Assembly (NCBI RefSeq): GCF_052425735.1
Contig: NC_135769.1
Coordinates: 32,984,001 to 33,048,000, forward strand
From: Oculina patagonica
Taxonomy: Eukaryota
DNA length: 64,000 nucleotides
Reading direction: 5' to 3'
Positions within the stretch are counted from its first letter, which is position 1. Each line of letters opens with the position of its first letter. This document shows, piece by piece, positions 48,356-58,124 of the stretch. The notes under the pieces were generated by a model. It made no database searches. It was not told the DNA's origin and saw nothing but the letters and a program-made list of their open reading frames with translations. Position numbers and translations under genes: made by a program.

Positions 48356-50993
48356 TTTGGATTGCGCGCTTTTTTGGAAGACTGCATTTGCATTGCGGGC
48401 TCAGATGTGTCATGTGTCACGGGGTGAGTCGTACTGACGATAACATGACGGAGCAATTTTCTTGTCTTTTGTTGTTTCCAGGTAGCTTTATATCTTTCTA
48501 GAAGTAAATATCGAGAAGCTGGGAAATCATGAAGTGAGCACTTAACAAAATTTCGAAAGCAGAGTATCCCTCAATGAGACACGCCTGCAAGGAATGAGTC
48601 AAGGACACTTTTGTTCAGTTGAATACCGTGACTACCATGACTCCCTGTAGGCGCACCTCTCTTGAGTCAACTTCATAATATTATTTCACATAATTTACCT
48701 TTTCCAAAAGAAACTCTGTATATTGCTCATTTTTACCGGCCATAAGTCGATTGTCTTGTAACTGAAATAAATTATATTCAGTTATTGGGCTGATGGTGAT
48801 TTCTATTATTCAACAAATGTCCACTGCGACGACACTGCGACCCTTCTTTTGGAGGCTGACAATATCAAATTGGCCTAAATTCTAGTTTTACATCCAAGCC
48901 TCACTTCCAAAATAAACTTGTATCTCCATCCATTCGATATTCCACGCCGTAATGTAATGTAATGTAAAATAAAGTTTTACATTACATTATTTTTTGTGAA
49001 TCAGATGTTTAACGGATAAAACTTGCATATGTCTGTGAACGGTCGAAATAAAAGTAATTGTACTTTTCATGCCATGCTTATAGCTCAGTACACATTTCAT
49101 CCCGAGGCGAATCGAGACGTTTGATTCCTCAGGTCTTGAACAGTTTATATTACGTGTCTTTTTTGGATTTTCAAACTCTTCTCGAGTCTTGATTAATGTC
49201 TTTACCTTTTACTAAAATGGCGTGAAGCGACATTTTTCGATTTCTAATTAATTCTTCAACTTATTGAAGAATCTAAATTACTAGAAAAAAATATGTTGTA
49301 GTTAAAAGATTTTGAACTTCTCGTGGGCCGAATAAAAAAATTATTGGCTCAGTTTCAGTTATAAGCTAATTTGTGTTCATTAAGCCAAGATAAGTCAGTT
49401 GACAAAGGACTCTAGAGAAATGTACATTTGTTTTTTATTCATTATTATTTTTTATGGTACAAAAGAAGCCCATGGCCAGTTGTTTTGTGTTCTCATTAAA
49501 GTACCTTCATTATATCGCTATTCAGTTATAGATATGTAAGTATAATTATTTAGTATAAACGAAATTAATCATTTCAGTGTGAGCTAAAGAATAATTAAGC
49601 ACAAGGAGACTACAAGGTCCTTCGACGTTAGCCGACTGTACCATATAGAGATATCACTGGATGTGATACATAAAGTCAGAAAACGCTAACAAAAGTAACA
49701 GCAAACCAAAGATTACTTCTACAAACACAATCCTGTACATAGGGTTTTTATCTTATGCTATTAGAGAAAGCTTGAAATGTGTTCATTGTTATCAGCAAAG
49801 CCTCAATTTGTGAGATTATCTAGTTTCCGTTAGGAAGTATTTGGTCTTGAACGGAAGATATAGTGAAACAACCGAGGCCAACTGCTTAGATTTTACGTGT
49901 ACTCTCAAAAGTTCTCCATTAAGTTGACACAGTTTGGTTTTCCACAAAATACTTCTCTTTAAATAGTTAAGTTGGATGAAGTAACAGTAAATCGATAATT
50001 GAGCTTTTATCTTAAATTAAAAATTTCACGAATATAAGATCCGGTTCGATGAAGACATAATCATGTTCTGAGTCTAAAAACCTTACACAATATCGTTAGT
50101 GGAACACAACCGCTTACGGCAAATCAGTGTAATGCTAATATCAAAGACATAGAAAATGAAAACTGGTCAGTATTAAAATACCCTTAAGCTTGCAGGATGT
50201 AAATTTAAAGCTATGTCATATTGGATTTTTTTTTTTAATTTTTCGCGGAAGGAATCAACAGGGCGATGAAAGGCGAAAGTTAGAAATATTTTTTGAATAA
50301 ACAAAGCATCCTCTAAAAAAGTGACTTTTCCCCCTCAAAAAGGAAATAAAAACGTGGAATATTCCTTGCAGCTAATTTTAAAAATCTCGAATGAAGTTTT
50401 GAGTGTATTTAGATAAAAAAAAAAAGTTATAAAAATGTCTGTTTCAAGAACGTGCTGTCCATAAGAGGAAACAAAAATGTCTTCATTAAAAACTCAAACG
50501 ATAAATGATTCAAAAGCCTTTTCATCGCATCCGGCATTTAAAACTCTTTTATCCGAACACAGTCAATGAACATTTAGTAATGATTACACAAAATAAAGCG
50601 GTGCTGTATTCAAAATGATTCGCCATGATGGTATAGGGGAAAAATGCTGATTATTTGGAGAAAACCAAATTACAATTAAAGAGCGAAGGTTTTCGCCAGA
50701 ATAAAAAGACGCCTGTGAACAAAAGAAAATTTGTTTCTTAGTTTCACTGATTAAAATCTAGCACAAAGCAATAATATTGAATGAAAAGGTGGAGCATTAA
50801 TTGTGCCAAGAAATAAAAAAAAATCTACTTGTTAATGAGGAGCGACCGGATGCGCATTAACCTACTAATTGCAAGCAGTGAGTGGGAGAACATTTGTTCC
50901 CTGAGAAGGAAAGAACATTTTATTTAATGACGATAGTGAACACATAATTAAAAATATAATTGAAGTGTTGATAGAAAATGTTTAAAACGGAAA

Positions 50994-51110
50994 GTATATA
51001 TAAGCTTTGTCATTTTCATGCGGAGATCACTTTAAGCCGGTGCAAGCAGTCAACCGCACACATTGTTAGCTTGCTTCGACCACAACTTTGAGAAGCGACA
51101 ATAATTTACA
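50994..51110 (+). promoter_or_regulatory. Putative TATA promoter and non-coding first exon of the GHIRamide gene
   Basis: gtatatataagc TATA-like box, donor-like CAG|GTACAG at 51110; the coding exon is preceded by a strong acceptor (ttccttcctttccag, 52727) 7 nt before the ATG, which implies an upstream exon. Confidence 0.45.
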
Positions 51111-51633
51111 GGTACAGTGATACATAAGTTGAATTTTCTTGTAAGGTTATTGATCTTCGGCAGCTCTTTCGTTTGGTTTTTCTTTTGCATTTTAGGATTA
51201 TTTTATTTGCAATAACCTAAATAACAAAAACTCAGCAACATTTTTTTCGGGATACAACCCCTAAACGTCTTCTTGAAATTAAGCTTTCTTTGATTAATTC
51301 GAGTTAATCAACGACGGTTTTAAAAAAATGTTTTGTTCAACTCTCTTAATGCCCCGCCTTTTCATTAAATATTACTGCTTTGTGCTGGATATTTATCAGT
51401 GAAACTAAGAAACAAATTTCTTTTATTCACGGACCAGTTTTACAGGCCAAAACGTTCGCCCCACAATTGCAATTTGTGTTTTTTCCAAATAATCAGCATT
51501 TTCTTCCAATACCATCATGGCGACCGTCTTTGATTTTAGTTTTTATTTTGTGTAGTCATAACTTATTTTTAAATGTTTATTGACTGTATTCAGATAAAAG
51601 AGTTTTTACTGCCGTATGCGATGAAAAAGCTTT

Positions 51634-51770
51634 GGATCAATTTAGGTTTCTGGGAAACTGCTCACCTACCCCTCCCCAAACCTAACATTAACCCTTACTT
51701 ATCGCTTTGGGCAAAATGTTAGGTTTGGGGAGGGGTAGGTGAGCAGTTTCCCAGAAACCTAAATTGATCC
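51634..51770. mobile_element. 137-bp palindromic MITE, 8-bp TSD
   Basis: ggatcaatttaggtttctgggaaactgctcacctacccctcccc / perfect reverse complement; aaagcttt on both sides; absent from paralogous sites at ~61405 and ~63148. Confidence 0.9.
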
Positions 51771-52734
51771 AAAGCTTTTTAGGTCCTTTGTTCCTAAAAA
51801 ATTTGCTAATCCTCTGGAATATGACTCCAACCAAAATCGAAATACGCGTAATGAATAAATGTTTTACTTGAAATTTTAAAAGCATGTTTCAATTCTTTCG
51901 AAAAGCAAAGAAACCTTTTGTTTACAAAATATTTTGTACAGGTTTGCTCCACTTTGCATGAAAAGACTGAGTAGAAAAATGGTTAATTTGTTATAATTTT
52001 ACTAAATTTAAAAAGCAAAACTTAAGTGTATTTATCTCTTGAACTTTTTACGTTAGCTTTTCCTTGTCAATTTTACCATGCAAACTCAACTTTTAGTTCG
52101 TAACCCTTGACGTGTATTCATTCTGGTTTTAAACAGATGTGGTCACTATATTCATGTTATTGTTCGTTGTATCTGTATATCGAGTTCTGTTCTTGTCAGA
52201 GATCTTTTTTGATAATAAGACACTTGCCAGATTTGAATGTGGCGTGAACTTTTCACCAAAGTGATAAGATGGGAATTTTAGGCTAACTTCTTCTTTTGTT
52301 TGTTTTTGTGTATTAGGTGTTTAGTTCCTCCTTGTTTTATGTTGTAAAACTTCATCTCTTTTTCCTCTTATAAATGTTCTGATTACATCTTTTACATGTA
52401 CTACTCATGAAATCTCCCAATCTATTTATCGGATTTTTGCTGCACTAAAAAAAAACTGCGCATGAAATGTTACACGGCTGAAATTATATCTGGAAATAAC
52501 TGAAAACATCTTTAGCTACAAAATCCTTTGGTTGATGATTTCCACTATTACATCGCCTGTCTGACTGACAATTGGAAATAATGGCCTAGCAGTATTCTTA
52601 ATTAAGGGGAAACAGTCATTGAGCGCTTTTGTGTAACAAGAGTTACATGTTAGCACAGTCAACATAAAAAAACTAGGTACTGAAACAATTAATTATAAAA
52701 CTAACTGTGAATTTCCTTCCTTTCCAGATTAACG

Positions 52735-55517
52735 ATGTTTTTAAGACTTGCCATCTTTTTTTCTGTGGTTTGCCTAGCAAGCTGCGAAGCGGAGAAAAAA
52801 TCCGAAGATCCTCCGTGGGCCGAGGCACTTAACGCAAAATATTTTGGCCATATTAGAGGCAAAAGAACGGTAAGAATAAAGGAAATAAATAAACAACCGA
52901 TACGATAACTTTTTAGTGAGTAAAGCATTGTATCTCTTTAATTCTAAGAGCCAAATCCCGTAATTACCATAAATAAAAAATGAAGGCTTTTTAGCAGTGC
53001 GCTCATGTACTGTTTGCTTATTTGTAATTCATTATATTTTTGTTCACTAACATACAATTTATATCATCTTTTTGTAAGCCGGACATTAGAACAATATCTG
53101 TACGAATCGAAAAAGTTAAAAAGGCTTTAAGGATATTACTGATTAGCACCTCTGTGTATTACATAATTGCGATCATATCATTTGATACCGCCTGTGAATG
53201 AAGTACTTGTTTGTAACTTTTGTAATTTCTCACAGCCAATCTCCTCTCCTTTAACATCTTTTAAAATACACTTCATTAGCAAATTTCTATTCAATCTGAA
53301 AGTTTTAAAAACGATAGTTCGCATTTCATATTCGTTAAGAAAATGTCTTTTCAGTCAATCTTCTCATAATAAGATAAGTTGTTTTGCAATTTTAATAAGT
53401 TTTTTTTTTTACTTTCACCCAACACAGGATTCAGAAGACTCTCCACCAGGCTTGGAAGAGGCTCTAAACAACGCTTATTATGGACATATCCGTGGAAAAA
53501 GAACGGTAAAAAAATTAACAAACTCTCAATTACACGTTTGCATTGGAAAGTGGTCATGTTACCTTTCATTGTGAGCATAACATAGGGACGAAATATTGAA
53601 AACTCGCAAACTGATTGGTCAACCAGGCCATCGTTATGTGCGCGTTTTTGCGTGTGAGCAACTGAGTAAGTTTACGTTTCTAACTGTTGTTACTTTACTG
53701 AAATGGCAATTGGTGTATATTTATTCTAACAGAAAGATTTAGAAAACTTTCCACCATTAGAGGAAGCACTTAATTCAGCTTATTTTGGACATATCCGTGG
53801 AAAACGAACGGTAAGAATTATATAAAATGGAACAACATAAAAAGAAACAGGTCAAGCAATTTGTTATTAGGTACAAGACTAATCCCAACAGTTAAGCTAA
53901 ACTTGTACATAACGTGAGTTTTACTAAAATATGAAAATGCGACTGCCTTACATTCGGTGTAAAATAGACTGATGAGAGCCTAAAGCAAGCTAACCACGTT
54001 TTCAATTTTGACTTTGGATCCAAACATTCCGTGGTGCGGACACTCAGGAAATAAAACGGGTTTAGCCATTCCAAATTTCTATTATTTTATTTAATGGACT
54101 GATTGAGTAACTATTTTTTTTAAACATCATTTAAACATCATATCTTCCGTTAATGCATGGTAATTAAGATATAAGGTTTAGGGTTCAGTATTTGGACCAA
54201 AGTTAATTGGTTCATTTATGTGCTAAGCCTCAGTTAAAAAAAATGCCATTTATTTGTCGTGATGGAGAGGAATATCGAGTGATAAGTCATTTTAGAACAG
54301 TGCAGTTACCATGGTTACAATTGACGCGCGTTACACCCTTAAGTTCCACGAATGATCTTCTATTTTCTCCTTATAGAACACATAGGGCAAGAAAATCACG
54401 AACATGATCATCTTGATTTGTTAATCAAATTCTCCCAACAAGTTTTATATATAAGAAACGTATAAAAGCGAGCAAGAGAATCTGCATTTATTTTACTTTT
54501 ACTTTGCATTCCATTTGTTTTACTTTTCTTTGCATTTGTTTTACTTACTTTACAGCTGGAAGGTTGGGGTTATAATCCTGCGCTTCGTGAAGCTCTCAAT
54601 AGGCAGTATTTTGGCCACATTCGGGGAAAAAGGACGGTAAGAAATCCAGTTAAACACGCTGGAGACGTTTCGCGTCACTTTAGGGGGTGGGGGATGGCGC
54701 AGTGGTGAGAGTCTCCTCCCCCCTTTTGGCGGGTTCCGCCGGGTTTTTTTTTTTTTTTTCTTTAAAAAAAAAAAAAAAATAAAAAATTTAAACGATGGAA
54801 ATTAAAACCTGAAAACGTTTGCATTGAGCTGTAGCTTGTTGTGTTTGTTTTTGCAGGGAGGCTGGGGATCAAATAAGAACTTGCTTGAGGCGTTAAACAA
54901 TGCCTACATGGGCCATATCCGCGGAAAAAGACAACAGGTATACACAACACATTCTAAACACTGCAGGTTGATTTTTTTTGTTTTGTTTTGTTGTTTTTGC
55001 TGATGTTAATGCACCTTTTATAAATGGCTCGTCCGCTCTTTTAAAAACTGGCGCTAAATTGATAAGAAGATAACGGTAGTCAAAATTTCTAAGTCAGAAG
55101 AAACATAAGAACAAAGGGAGCTAACGAAAAAATGTGAACATAAACATTTGCCAACTTTCTGCGCGCCGGGCCATTTCGAAATTATGACGTCGCACAGTCA
55201 ACAAAAGGGCTATCGTTTTCTGATAATAGGAAACCTTATCTGACGTCATATAATCGCAAAGGAAGATCATACACATTACACATACACATTAAAATGGTTG
55301 ATACTTGGATCCAATTCTTTGTAGCATTTTAAATTATTCTATTGTAACACATCTTGACAAGTTTATAAAACAGACTAAACAATTTAATGGCAGTTTCGTT
55401 AACAAAGGAAGACATACCAATTAGGGGTACCATCAAGCATTTTTTATTTGTTAATTTTAAATATTTCGTTATTTTGTTTTATATTTTCAGGACACAGAGG
55501 AGAAGTCAGCTGAATAA
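52735..55517 (+). CDS. HIRamide-type neuropeptide precursor (159 aa): signal peptide plus five GHIR-amide peptides, one per exon
   Basis: Phase-0 exons: 52735-52869 MFLRLAIFFSVVCLASCEAEKKSEDPPWAEALNAKYFGHIRGKRT; 53428-53505 DSEDSPPGLEEALNNAYYGHIRGKRT; 53733-53810 KDLENFPPLEEALNSAYFGHIRGKRT; 54556-54636 LEGWGYNPALREALNRQYFGHIRGKRT; 54857-54937 GGWGSNKNLLEALNNAYMGHIRGKRQQ; 55491-55517 DTEEKSAE*. G-KR is the amidation plus dibasic cleavage signal. Confidence 0.92.
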
Positions 55518-56615
55518 AAACCTGTTGAGGAATGCCATAAAAATCCGATAAATGATACCATTACCGATCTCGAGTCAACATTATATGCTAAATAACTAAG
55601 AAAAATTGATGTTGAGTGAAAAATAAATTGTTCTTTCCAGTCGACATGTTTCATGACAAGTTATAAATAAATCAACACAGAGTCGACTGAACACAAAAAA
55701 TTTGTAAATGTGAAATAAAATAAAGTTTAACAGAAGAAGCAGACGAAATTGAGTTGCACTGGTGATCATTTGTTCCTCAAGAAAGAAAATAAATGAAAAA
55801 ATAGAAAAACAAACACGAAAAAATGCTAACACAACCAACTAAATACAGAATAATGACAATATTAAGGCAAAAAAGAAATGTTGTTAGCTACTATCACATG
55901 ACATCAGCAAAAGACAATGAAAAATTGGATCAACTATAAAATATTACTGAAATTCACCGCAATTTATCACTCCGTAGGTGGAAACGGCCGACTCTAAAAA
56001 CATAAATGTTTAGATAATGGTTTTTTACTGCCTGTCCACCTTTCAACAATTTCATTTAACAATTGCTGCGACATTTCTTAAATCAATATTTAATGACTCC
56101 CTTTTTCTGATACTTACTCTCAAGCAAATTATAACGATTCGTTATATAAGGTGATATGAAATAATAATACATCATCCAATAATAATATGTATACCTCCAC
56201 CGAAGCACATCCCTTCTTTCCTTTAAGAGGCCATTTTCAAGACAACCTTTTCCTCTGTTTCAAAACAAGTCTACGTGCGAAACCATTTATATGTTTTGAA
56301 ACAGAGACTAAGGGGAACTCGGAAATGGCCTGTTGCCTTGCATAATGCCATGTAAATGTAATAGTAAGTTTAATCTCGTAACAGAAATTTAAAAACAAAT
56401 AAATGCCATCGGTTTTGTTAATGCAATATGCAAGCTATAGCTAATCGGTTTGAAAACACATCCGTTCCTTATATTCTTATTAATTAAACTGTAAAGCTTC
56501 ACGGTAATGACAATGAAGAATGCTTTTTTCGAAATAACAGTTTTTTTTTTATTTTCTAGAAAATTTCATTGATCACAACAGATTTGAACACTAGTGATCC
56601 AAACATACTCCCAGT

Positions 56616-58124
56616 TTACGGCATAGACTTTTTTCCAGTCATAATGCCGCACAATAGAAATTCCCCAGCTTTCACTACCCTGACTGTTAACACGTGACTT
56701 CCAGAAGTCACATTGTGTGCCACAGTGACAAGCTTTGTGTGGCCAAATGGAGAATACGTGTTGACAACGATTCCAGGTTTGTCCTTCTCCAACCAAATCT
56801 CTGCTTTTCCACCGTGGCCGCTCGTACGGAACACTACAACAACATCCCTGGTGACCTTGCCTCTCCCCACATCTAATGGCAAATCAAATTGGAGTTTCAA
56901 TGTAGAATTTTCTATCTCTGCTTTCCACCCGCCAAATCCATCCGTTCGTAAAGGTCTGACGTTATATTTTTCCTGCATCGTTTTGTGAAAACCGATAGCA
57001 ACGTCTTTAACTTGTTTAAATCCGATATTTTTTATTTCTCTGACAGAAAGCGACGGATTAAAAAACGTGTTAGTTACATCTGGAGTGACTAAAGTATAAC
57101 AGAGTGGGTCTGGAACAACTCCCTGGGTGTCCATGAAATAAACAGGTCTCTGCAAGTCGTGTGAAGGTAAAGGATGGGAACCTTGTTTTAAACTTTCTAT
57201 GGCCCTCAGTAAAGCATTACGAACACTGTTGATAATCATCAGTGCCATTTGCGCATGTGCAATAATGCTGGCGTGGTTACCATCAGATGAAAACATGGTA
57301 GGATATTTTTTCATTCCATTATTTGGACATAATGTATCTCGCGTGCTGAAGCTTGTAATCCCATAATGCCAGGCAAGCATTGTCTGTCCATTATTTTCCA
57401 GATTATCACATACGGGAACATAACTTTGTCCTTGAATAAAGTTCACAAACATGACAGCGGGTAAAGTGTCTTCACTCAACAGCTGCCTTGTAAGTCTTTC
57501 GAGAGACATTGCCCTTGGAAGCCGAGTGTCTTTAAAAAGCATGCAATCGTTAACTGAAAACTCGAGGAATACAATGTCCAGGTTGTCTTCAGGTTCCATT
57601 AAAGTTTTGTAGCAAAACGAGAAAAAGTTGCTAGCAGTTCCTCCAACGGCGAGATTACGAAGCCCAATGTTCGATCCTGTGAGAGGCTGTACGGCTTTGT
57701 GCCACCAATCGATAAACACTCGGTAATAGATGCCACTTAGATCGGAGTAATCGTTAATTATTCCACCGCCGGCCGATATCGACCCACCCATGACTGTAGT
57801 GCCAATGTTTTGACCGAGTAAAGCTCTTGTCATAATATTTTGAAGACGGTCTTTCGTTGTTCTTCTTTCGACAATCTGTTTGTTATAAGACTCTGTAGTT
57901 AGTGACAGATCTTCCAAAGACTTAAACCTGTCTTTAAAATACCAGATTTCAAAAGGGTTCCTTTTAACGGAACGTTTGAGAGCATCGATTTGAGTGAAAG
58001 TCTCAAAAGGCCTGCTGTTCACTTCTTGTTGCTTGTCACGTAAAGAATGGAAGCTTTTCCTCTCTTCTTGTGCCAAAGTTAAACACACGATGATGGTGGA
58101 AATGATGATATTTAGACGAACCAT
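56616..58124 (-). CDS. Intronless secreted SGNH/GDSL-like hydrolase, 502 aa, with C-terminal beta-rich domain
   Basis: Signal-like N-terminus; block I MGGSIS, block II AVGGTAS, block III LEFSVND, block V DGNH. Confidence 0.88.
   Translation of the reverse strand: MVRLNIIISTIIVCLTLAQEERKSFHSLRDKQQEVNSRPFETFTQIDALKRSVKRNPFEIWYFKDRFKSLEDLSLTTESYNKQIVERRTTKDRLQNIMTRALLGQNIGTTVMGGSISAGGGIINDYSDLSGIYYRVFIDWWHKAVQPLTGSNIGLRNLAVGGTASNFFSFCYKTLMEPEDNLDIVFLEFSVNDCMLFKDTRLPRAMSLERLTRQLLSEDTLPAVMFVNFIQGQSYVPVCDNLENNGQTMLAWHYGITSFSTRDTLCPNNGMKKYPTMFSSDGNHASIIAHAQMALMIINSVRNALLRAIESLKQGSHPLPSHDLQRPVYFMDTQGVVPDPLCYTLVTPDVTNTFFNPSLSVREIKNIGFKQVKDVAIGFHKTMQEKYNVRPLRTDGFGGWKAEIENSTLKLQFDLPLDVGRGKVTRDVVVVFRTSGHGGKAEIWLEKDKPGIVVNTYSPFGHTKLVTVAHNVTSGSHVLTVRVVKAGEFLLCGIMTGKKSMP

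Follow-up and report, generated by a model that had tools for sequence, protein, structure and literature searches.

HIRamide precursors of Hexacorallia

Precursors of neuropeptides ending in His-Ile-Arg-amide (HIRamides) form a family specific to Hexacorallia. Ten HIRamide peptides of the anemone Nematostella have been identified by mass spectrometry, and the gene is expressed in neurons around the mouth, in cells with neurites (Hayakawa et al. 2019; PMC6756747). Two Nematostella G protein-coupled receptors (GPCRs) respond to these peptides with half-maximal effective concentrations (EC50) of 2.1 nM and 190 nM, and the peptides are trimmed stepwise from the N-terminus at Pro-related sites (Thiel et al. 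2024; PMC11087051). Koch & Grimmelikhuijzen (2020) described the family as 'neuropeptide family #6', with an FHIRamide or FGHIRamide C-terminus, and reported it from Actiniaria, six Scleractinia, four Corallimorpharia and Zoanthus (PMC7523074). Here, we analyze a locus on the forward strand of a 64,000-nucleotide stretch of the genome of Oculina patagonica (contig NC_135769.1, positions 32,984,001 to 33,048,000; hereafter the window, the coordinates of which are used throughout), which very probably is the stony-coral orthologue of the hexacoral HIRamide (FHIRamide/FGHIRamide) neuropeptide preprohormone gene.

Additional file 6 of the family #6 study compiles precursors from Acropora, Montipora, Pocillopora, Stylophora, Porites, Orbicella, Amplexidiscus, Corynactis, Discosoma and Ricordea. 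The EALN core and the FGHIR C-terminus can already be seen in this set, as can the two copy subtypes discussed below (PMC7523074). The window shares with these scleractinian and corallimorpharian preprohormones a signal sequence of the form MFLR...CLASC, the EALNxxYFGHIRGKR core, the succession of PP-type copies followed by LEGWG-type and GGWGS-type copies, and a short acidic tail. Its first copy, DPPWAEALNAKYFGHIRGKR, is identical to the first copy of Amplexidiscus, and the order of its five copies is that of the Corynactis australis transcript (PPW, PPY, PPY, LEGWG, GGWGS), whereas the published entries from Orbicella, Porites rus, Stylophora and Pocillopora contain three or four copies, compared with five intact ones in the window (PMC7523074). 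The Nematostella precursor is likewise multi-copy, and its peptides are long, start with X-Pro-Pro, have an aromatic residue ahead of HIR-amide and are processed at Gly-Lys-Arg sites. By contrast, the anemone peptides lack the Gly and so end in F/Y-HIR-NH2, and the place of the coral EALN is taken by a Pro-rich middle (PPYIDLTEPS); anemone precursors contain 5 to 10 copies (PMC7523074).

The genomic layout behind these precursors has received no explicit treatment in the literature searched. Neither 'exon' nor 'intron' is used in PMC6756747, PMC7523074 or PMC11087051, and PMC7523074 gives protein sequences only, from species other than that of the window. According to its label, the Phymanthus entry in that study translates a genomic contig in a single frame, and it runs through the signal peptide and all nine copies (PMC7523074); this label suggests that the anemone copies share one exon, in contrast to one exon per copy in the window. 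A full-text literature search for FHIRamide found only PMC7523074. Searches combining neuropeptides, exon duplication and Cnidaria found nothing relevant.

An arrangement with each peptide and its processing sites in an exon of its own is familiar from the vertebrate genes for proglucagon (glucagon, GLP-1, GLP-2), VIP/PHM and TAC1, in which the exons arose by duplication and, in the case of TAC1, the peptide set varies through the use of cassette exons. The vertebrate genes have no sequence relationship to the coral gene, and alternative splicing, which for the coral gene is a proposal, is documented for them.

A split gene with one peptide per exon

The locus proved to be a genuine split gene, which encodes a neuropeptide precursor of a stony coral with one predicted GHIR-amide peptide in each of five exons. 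A script check of splice signals combined with direct reading of positions 52400-55900 yielded six coding exons on the forward strand (52735-55517) with coding lengths of 135, 78, 78, 81, 81 and 27 nt, each a multiple of 3 and all in phase 0. All coding exons are preceded by a pyrimidine tract and AG, and all donors read GTAAG, GTAAA or GTATA. The splice junctions are predicted from these signals and from homology to gene models and transcripts of other species. When joined, the exons form a coding sequence of 480 nt that specifies a precursor of 159 amino acids without internal stop codons.

Exon 1 (52728..52869) opens with 7 nt of 5' untranslated region (5'UTR), the acceptor lying directly before the start codon (ttccag/attaacgATG, with the ATG at 52735). 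Its 135-nt coding part (52735-52869) encodes the putative signal peptide MFLRLAIFFSVVCLASC, followed by copy 1, DPPWAEALNAKYFGHIR-GKR-T. The signal peptide was called from hydrophobicity and alignment: it has a basic n-region and a hydrophobic core with a mean Kyte-Doolittle value above 2 over residues 1-17, and it aligns with the equivalent region of the published precursors and of the coral relatives P0002-P0004 described below. Exons 2 (53428..53505; 78 nt; DSEDSPPGLEEALNNAYYGHIR-GKR-T), 3 (53733..53810; 78 nt; KDLENFPPLEEALNSAYFGHIR-GKR-T), 4 (54556..54636; 81 nt; LEGWGYNPALREALNRQYFGHIR-GKR-T) and 5 (54857..54937; 81 nt; GGWGSNKNLLEALNNAYMGHIR-GKR-QQ) are all of phase 0-0 and are built alike, with a spacer, the peptide up to GHIR, Gly-Lys-Arg and one or two more codons. 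Thus, each of exons 1-5 ends in EALNxxY(F/Y/M)GHIRGKR plus either one codon (Thr) or two (Gln-Gln). The coding part of exon 6 (55491..55517; 27 nt including the TAA stop) adds an eight-residue acidic tail, DTEEKSAE, and is followed by a probable 3'UTR (55518..55771) with AATAAA signals at 55622, 55666 and 55714. The 3'UTR is 81.6% identical up to 55771 to the orthologous Tara Pacific scaffold L001 introduced below.

The peptide copies are held by purifying selection

In six-frame translation, the motif HIRG[KR][KR] occurs exactly five times in the window, each time on the forward strand and within the peptide gene, compared with a mean of 0.01 over 200 shuffles. No decayed or additional peptide copies were found in the introns or elsewhere in the window at E<0.3 in a relaxed tblastn search. 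The five copies, which end in Y(F/Y/M)GHIR followed by Gly and a dibasic site (G-KR), fall into a PP-type subtype (exons 1-3) and a GWG-type subtype (exons 4-5). The precursor matches no Pfam family.

Twelve residues are invariant across the five copies, with varied codons. In the 15-codon core, 84% of synonymous sites differ between the paralogous copies as compared with 15% of non-synonymous sites, indicating that the duplications are old and that the peptide has been held by selection. The same is apparent between species. Relative to L001, the window shows 25 synonymous and 13 non-synonymous differences (ratio of non-synonymous to synonymous divergence, dN/dS, 0.12), and in blastn alignments with this scaffold the exons stand out as islands of conservation within poorly alignable introns. 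The C-terminal 15 residues of the copies are under purifying selection.

These results agree with much of a preliminary description of the locus, which had proposed a signal peptide and five phase-0 exons ending in EALNxxY(F/Y/M)GHIR-G-KR, synonymous codon variation around a conserved motif, Gly-Lys-Arg as the amidation and cleavage signal, PP-type and GWG-type N-termini, and one copy per symmetric exon as the outcome of exon duplication. Its assignment of the gene to the HIRamide family is borne out by the profile matches presented below and by Additional file 6 of PMC7523074. The suggestion that the peptides themselves were new did not hold, since the family had been published before, including its EALN-bearing coral form and both subtypes (PMC7523074). 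The exon layout is undescribed in the literature searched, although public models for Porites lobata, Pocillopora meandrina and Desmophyllum pertusum contain it implicitly. The further suggestion that alternative splicing might tune the mixture of peptides found support for exon 4 only, and of an indirect kind.

The one-copy-per-exon layout is conserved among stony corals

A word-index search with a 40-residue region of the 135-amino-acid open reading frame (ORF) around exon 2 returned a single candidate, P0001, located on a 7.7-kb Tara Pacific metagenome scaffold (L001) which has its five peptide exons and its tail exon arranged as in the window, with AG/GT boundaries kept. Searching 1.84 billion representative proteins with a HMMER profile built on the five exon translations gave 26 hits. 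Three of them are full-length spliced precursors, with five copies in P. lobata (P0002) and four each in D. pertusum (P0003) and Stylophora pistillata (P0004), and with profile E-values from 1e-57 (P0002) to 1e-54. A later search added P. meandrina (P0027) and P. damicornis (P0028). The full-length relatives are labelled hypothetical or unnamed. The remaining HMMER matches (approximately 20) are single-exon ORFs from coral DNA in metagenomes or sequencing runs, which read 'GKRTV...' into the intron GT, showing that an exon boundary one codon past the dibasic site is general.

Genomic mapping of P0002 placed the P. lobata exons at 144/81/75/87/81/21 nt and that of P0003 placed the D. pertusum exons at 147/75/78/84/24 nt, all in phase 0, and the P. 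meandrina locus (L004) as well as L001, L005/L006 and L007 have the same layout as the window. One copy per exon is thus kept in at least six other coral loci, including those of Porites, Pocillopora and Desmophyllum and three metagenome loci. Orthologues of exon 1 were found in L001-L004, those of exons 2 and 3, with AG/GT boundaries kept, in L001, L002, L003, L004 and L005, and those of exon 5 in L001-L005 and L007. The exon 6 junction is common to the P. lobata and D. pertusum gene models, and its orthologue in L001 encodes DTEEKSTE*. The closest exon sequences to those of the window are on the Logan contig L007 and on L001.

Traces of the same layout can be recognized in the published supplement. 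The RNA-derived sequences join the copies exactly at the exon ends of the window, and the Amplexidiscus, Stylophora, Orbicella and Discosoma entries continue into the intron after GKRT or GKR(E/Q)Q, with the Orbicella 'GKREQVHTEH' paralleling the read-through 'GKRQQVYTTH' of the window (PMC7523074).

When individual units were compared across species, the best match was the exon at the same position for 22 of 25 units, the other three being swaps between the similar exons 2 and 3. The positional matches point to five old orthologous exon sets, and this comparison gave no sign of concerted evolution among the five exons. The layout is conserved between complex and robust corals. The five modules are old exon duplicates predating the split between these two groups and, given the Corynactis transcript, probably also predate the split from Corallimorpharia.

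Exon 4 is unusually conserved and repeatedly broken or omitted

One of the five peptide exons departs from the others. Exon 4, together with approximately 27 nt of the upstream and 42 nt of the downstream intron, forms a block (54529..54678) that is 93.5% identical to L001 and 94.6% identical to the Desmophyllum locus (L002) in blastn alignments, whereas the other exon blocks show 83-90% identity. Across seven loci, synonymous divergence was 0.53, 0.50, 0.46 and 0.57 for exons 1, 2, 3 and 5, respectively, and 0.16 for exon 4, approximately three-fold below its sister exons. Exon 4 was the lowest or tied for the lowest in every species pair computed. Between the window and the near-identical L007 the values were 0.11 for exon 4 and 0.12 for exon 5; between the window and Porites they were 0.16 for exon 4 and 0.46-0.82 for the other exons. 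At non-synonymous sites, exons 4 and 5 diverge to a similar degree (0.06 and 0.08, respectively).

This anomalous synonymous constraint is new, and yet the exon is broken or omitted in several species. In the Desmophyllum orthologue (L002:13265-13345, GCA_029204205.1), a run of five A is reduced to four, which shortens the exon to 80 nt and destroys the frame. The D. pertusum gene model skips this 80-nt exon and the annotated protein is devoid of the corresponding peptide copy. The A-run difference may be a genuine lesion or may stem from a homopolymer error of the assembly. In the P. meandrina orthologue (L004:6230-6350), a TAG replaces a Trp codon and GRFR stands in place of GHIR; the deposited model rescues this exon by using a shifted exon-3 donor and a shifted acceptor. 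The exon 4 copy is missing from the models of P. damicornis (P0028), S. pistillata (P0004) and D. pertusum (P0003) and is present in those of P. lobata (P0002) and P. meandrina (P0027). The P. meandrina model also reads through the exon-5 donor, and its C-terminus differs from that of the RefSeq P. damicornis isoform in PMC7523074.

RNA structure was considered as the cause of the exon 4 conservation and rejected, given a fold z-score of +0.43, a weak consensus structure and no real covariation. Long-range complementarity that would loop out the exon was likewise rejected, the only arms found being AT-rich, 76% complementary and judged to be due to chance. The exon has no match in Rfam to a known RNA family or microRNA.

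Putative promoter, upstream non-coding exon and neighboring features

The gene extends further upstream than its coding sequence. A putative-promoter TATA box, TATATAAGC, lies at 50997..51005 on the forward strand and is identical in D. pertusum L002, where it is found approximately 30 nt upstream of the annotated first exon. In the window it precedes a non-coding exon, exon 0 (~51027-51111, forward strand), the start of which is approximate (TATA + 30 nt) and the end of which is set by the donor ACAG/GTAC. Exon 0 shares approximately 80% identity with the first exon of the D. pertusum model (P0003 in L002), which lies approximately 1 kb upstream and is spliced to the equivalent acceptor, and the donor is at the same position (51111/51112). 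No upstream ATG was found in exon 0. The conserved TATA box and the homologous exon 0 indicate that the gene begins approximately 1.7 kb upstream of the coordinates given in the preliminary description (52735-55517), which cover the coding sequence without the non-coding exon and the TATA box.

The region upstream of the promoter, approximately 1.5 kb in length (49714-51238), aligns to the Desmophyllum locus at 70% and contains no ORFs of 80 amino acids or longer. This conserved non-coding sequence, between EME1 and the peptide gene, could have a regulatory role. Synteny is preserved on both sides, with EME1 upstream of the peptide gene also in P. meandrina and a GDSL-like ORF downstream in all loci. 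The latter is a 502-amino-acid single-exon ORF (56616-58124, reverse strand), convergent with the peptide gene. Its DNA is approximately 80-84% identical in L001 and L002, and synteny extends to Porites and Pocillopora. The sole Pfam match of this ORF is a weak one to GDSL-like lipase (17.5 bits, below the cut-off).

Two of the introns contain elements of their own. Intron 0 carries a perfect 66-nt inverted repeat with a 25-nt loop (51624-51780), which gave sub-threshold matches to several plant and animal microRNA hairpin models on both strands and is probably a palindrome resembling miniature inverted-repeat transposable elements or a recent insertion. Intron 4 contains an insertion (54680-54800) that is not present in the introns of L001 and L002, in which T16 and then A16 come after a G-rich head, gggggtgggggatggcgcagtggtgagag. 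In appearance it resembles a small retroposon or hairpin-forming element; a tRNA-derived short interspersed element was rejected, as ARAGORN found no tRNA.

Predicted maturation and alternative explanations

The orthology of the locus with the HIRamide genes is evident from the profile matches, from the copy order and sequences in Additional file 6 of PMC7523074 and from the EME1 synteny in P. meandrina. Drawing on established prohormone biochemistry and on the Nematostella data, the maturation of its product can be outlined as follows. Transcription would start behind the TATA box near 51000, and the short non-coding exon would be spliced to exon 1, so that the six phase-0 coding exons (seven exons in total) give rise to a secretory precursor of 159 amino acids. 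After removal of the signal peptide, a prohormone convertase would cut after each Lys-Arg, a carboxypeptidase would take off the basic residues, and the exposed Gly would be converted into a C-terminal amide, so that five related peptides with a Y(F/Y/M)GHIR-NH2 terminus would result. By analogy with Nematostella, the N-termini of copies 1-3 are probably at Asp/Ser/Phe-Pro-Pro, corresponding to peptides of approximately 17-18 residues, while those of the two GWG-type copies are uncertain. The peptides would be released from neurons and act on class-A GPCRs related to Nematostella R21 and R29. Each internal exon can be regarded as a complete processing module that comprises spacer, peptide, Gly-Lys-Arg and a further codon. 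As the exons are symmetric and each is a self-contained unit, losing, skipping or duplicating one of them would alter the number of peptides and leave the rest of the precursor unharmed, which fits the presence of three to five copies among corals.

Several points weigh against identifying the locus as a neuropeptide gene of this kind. The signal peptide is a prediction from hydrophobicity and alignment, and the splice junctions are supported by sequence signals and by gene models and transcripts of other species. The coral peptides contain an extra Gly (FGHIR versus FHIR in anemones), so that the anemone receptor data may not be transferable, and the literature searched yielded no coral data on neuronal expression or GPCR activation for HIRamides. 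The predicted peptides are 17-24 residues long with Glu or Asp in mid-peptide, and Koch & Grimmelikhuijzen voiced doubt, on account of such length and acidic residues, that these are genuine neuropeptides (PMC7523074). Hence, the peptides might be secreted and amidated without serving as neuronal transmitters, for example in epithelial or glandular secretion. We regard this as improbable: in Nematostella, members of the family were seen by mass spectrometry and in cells with neurites (PMC6756747) and activate two GPCRs at nanomolar to sub-micromolar concentrations (PMC11087051), and in corals the C-terminal half of the peptide is under strong purifying selection. The idea that short ORFs lined up by chance, or that the gene is dead, is refuted by the excess of the motif over the shuffled expectation, splice sites and phases that are all intact, the low dN/dS and the orthologous structure in other coral loci, and is left with a negligible probability.

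A different question is whether, within a functional HIRamide precursor gene, exon 4 and perhaps other internal exons serve as regulated cassettes. Skipping of one phase 0-0 module would remove one peptide and leave the rest intact, so that a cell could adjust its mix of peptides by splicing, and the constraint on exon 4 and its intron flanks would then reflect splicing-regulatory sequence. The reduced synonymous divergence, the conservation of the flanking introns, the varying inclusion of the exon among the gene models of different species and the printing of the P. damicornis RefSeq entry as 'isoform X1' (PMC7523074) are all compatible with such a role. With its length of 81 nt, divisible by 3, and raised conservation of synonymous sites and intron flanks, exon 4 carries the classical sequence marks of conserved alternative exons. 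Conserved alternative exons of vertebrates and insects combine high conservation of exon and flanks with a length divisible by 3. On the other hand, exon 4 has splice sites that match those of its neighbors in strength, no stable or covarying RNA structure was found there, the Corynactis and Ricordea transcripts include the exon (PMC7523074), and in two species, D. pertusum and P. meandrina, its omission is explained by lesions rather than by regulation. As lesions are the simpler reason for the omissions, a regulated cassette is a tentative proposal drawn from the comparison of sequences and gene models, with the odds against it. That exon 4 may carry splicing-regulatory information, in the manner of conserved cassette exons, is nonetheless the best available reading of its conservation. 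The broader scenario, in which the HIRamide gene of stony corals was rebuilt from a precursor with many copies in one exon, as is apparently the case in anemones, into a series of symmetric one-peptide exons, and in which exon 4 is a regulated cassette with more constraint on its nucleotides than the peptide requires, is somewhat more doubtful still.

Implications for coral neuropeptide genes

The peptide family, its likely amidation and its receptors in an anemone were already known. What the window contributes is the FGHIRamide precursor gene of a further stony coral, complete with five copies, a putative promoter and the 5'UTR exon. The additions beyond that are modest and two in number, namely an architecture with one peptide per exon, now explicit and conserved among corals, and the anomalous constraint that exon 4 shows. 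The first makes explicit what the peptide papers are silent about, that each FGHIRamide-family peptide in Scleractinia has its own phase-0 exon, and this layout explains why published coral precursors contain three, four or five copies: single exons have been lost, broken or missed with the frame undamaged. The second offers a concrete and cheap way to ask whether a cnidarian varies a neuropeptide set by alternative splicing. If the cassette scenario is true, corals would set their neuropeptide mix by splicing, and lineages could lose or gain single peptides without breaking the gene.

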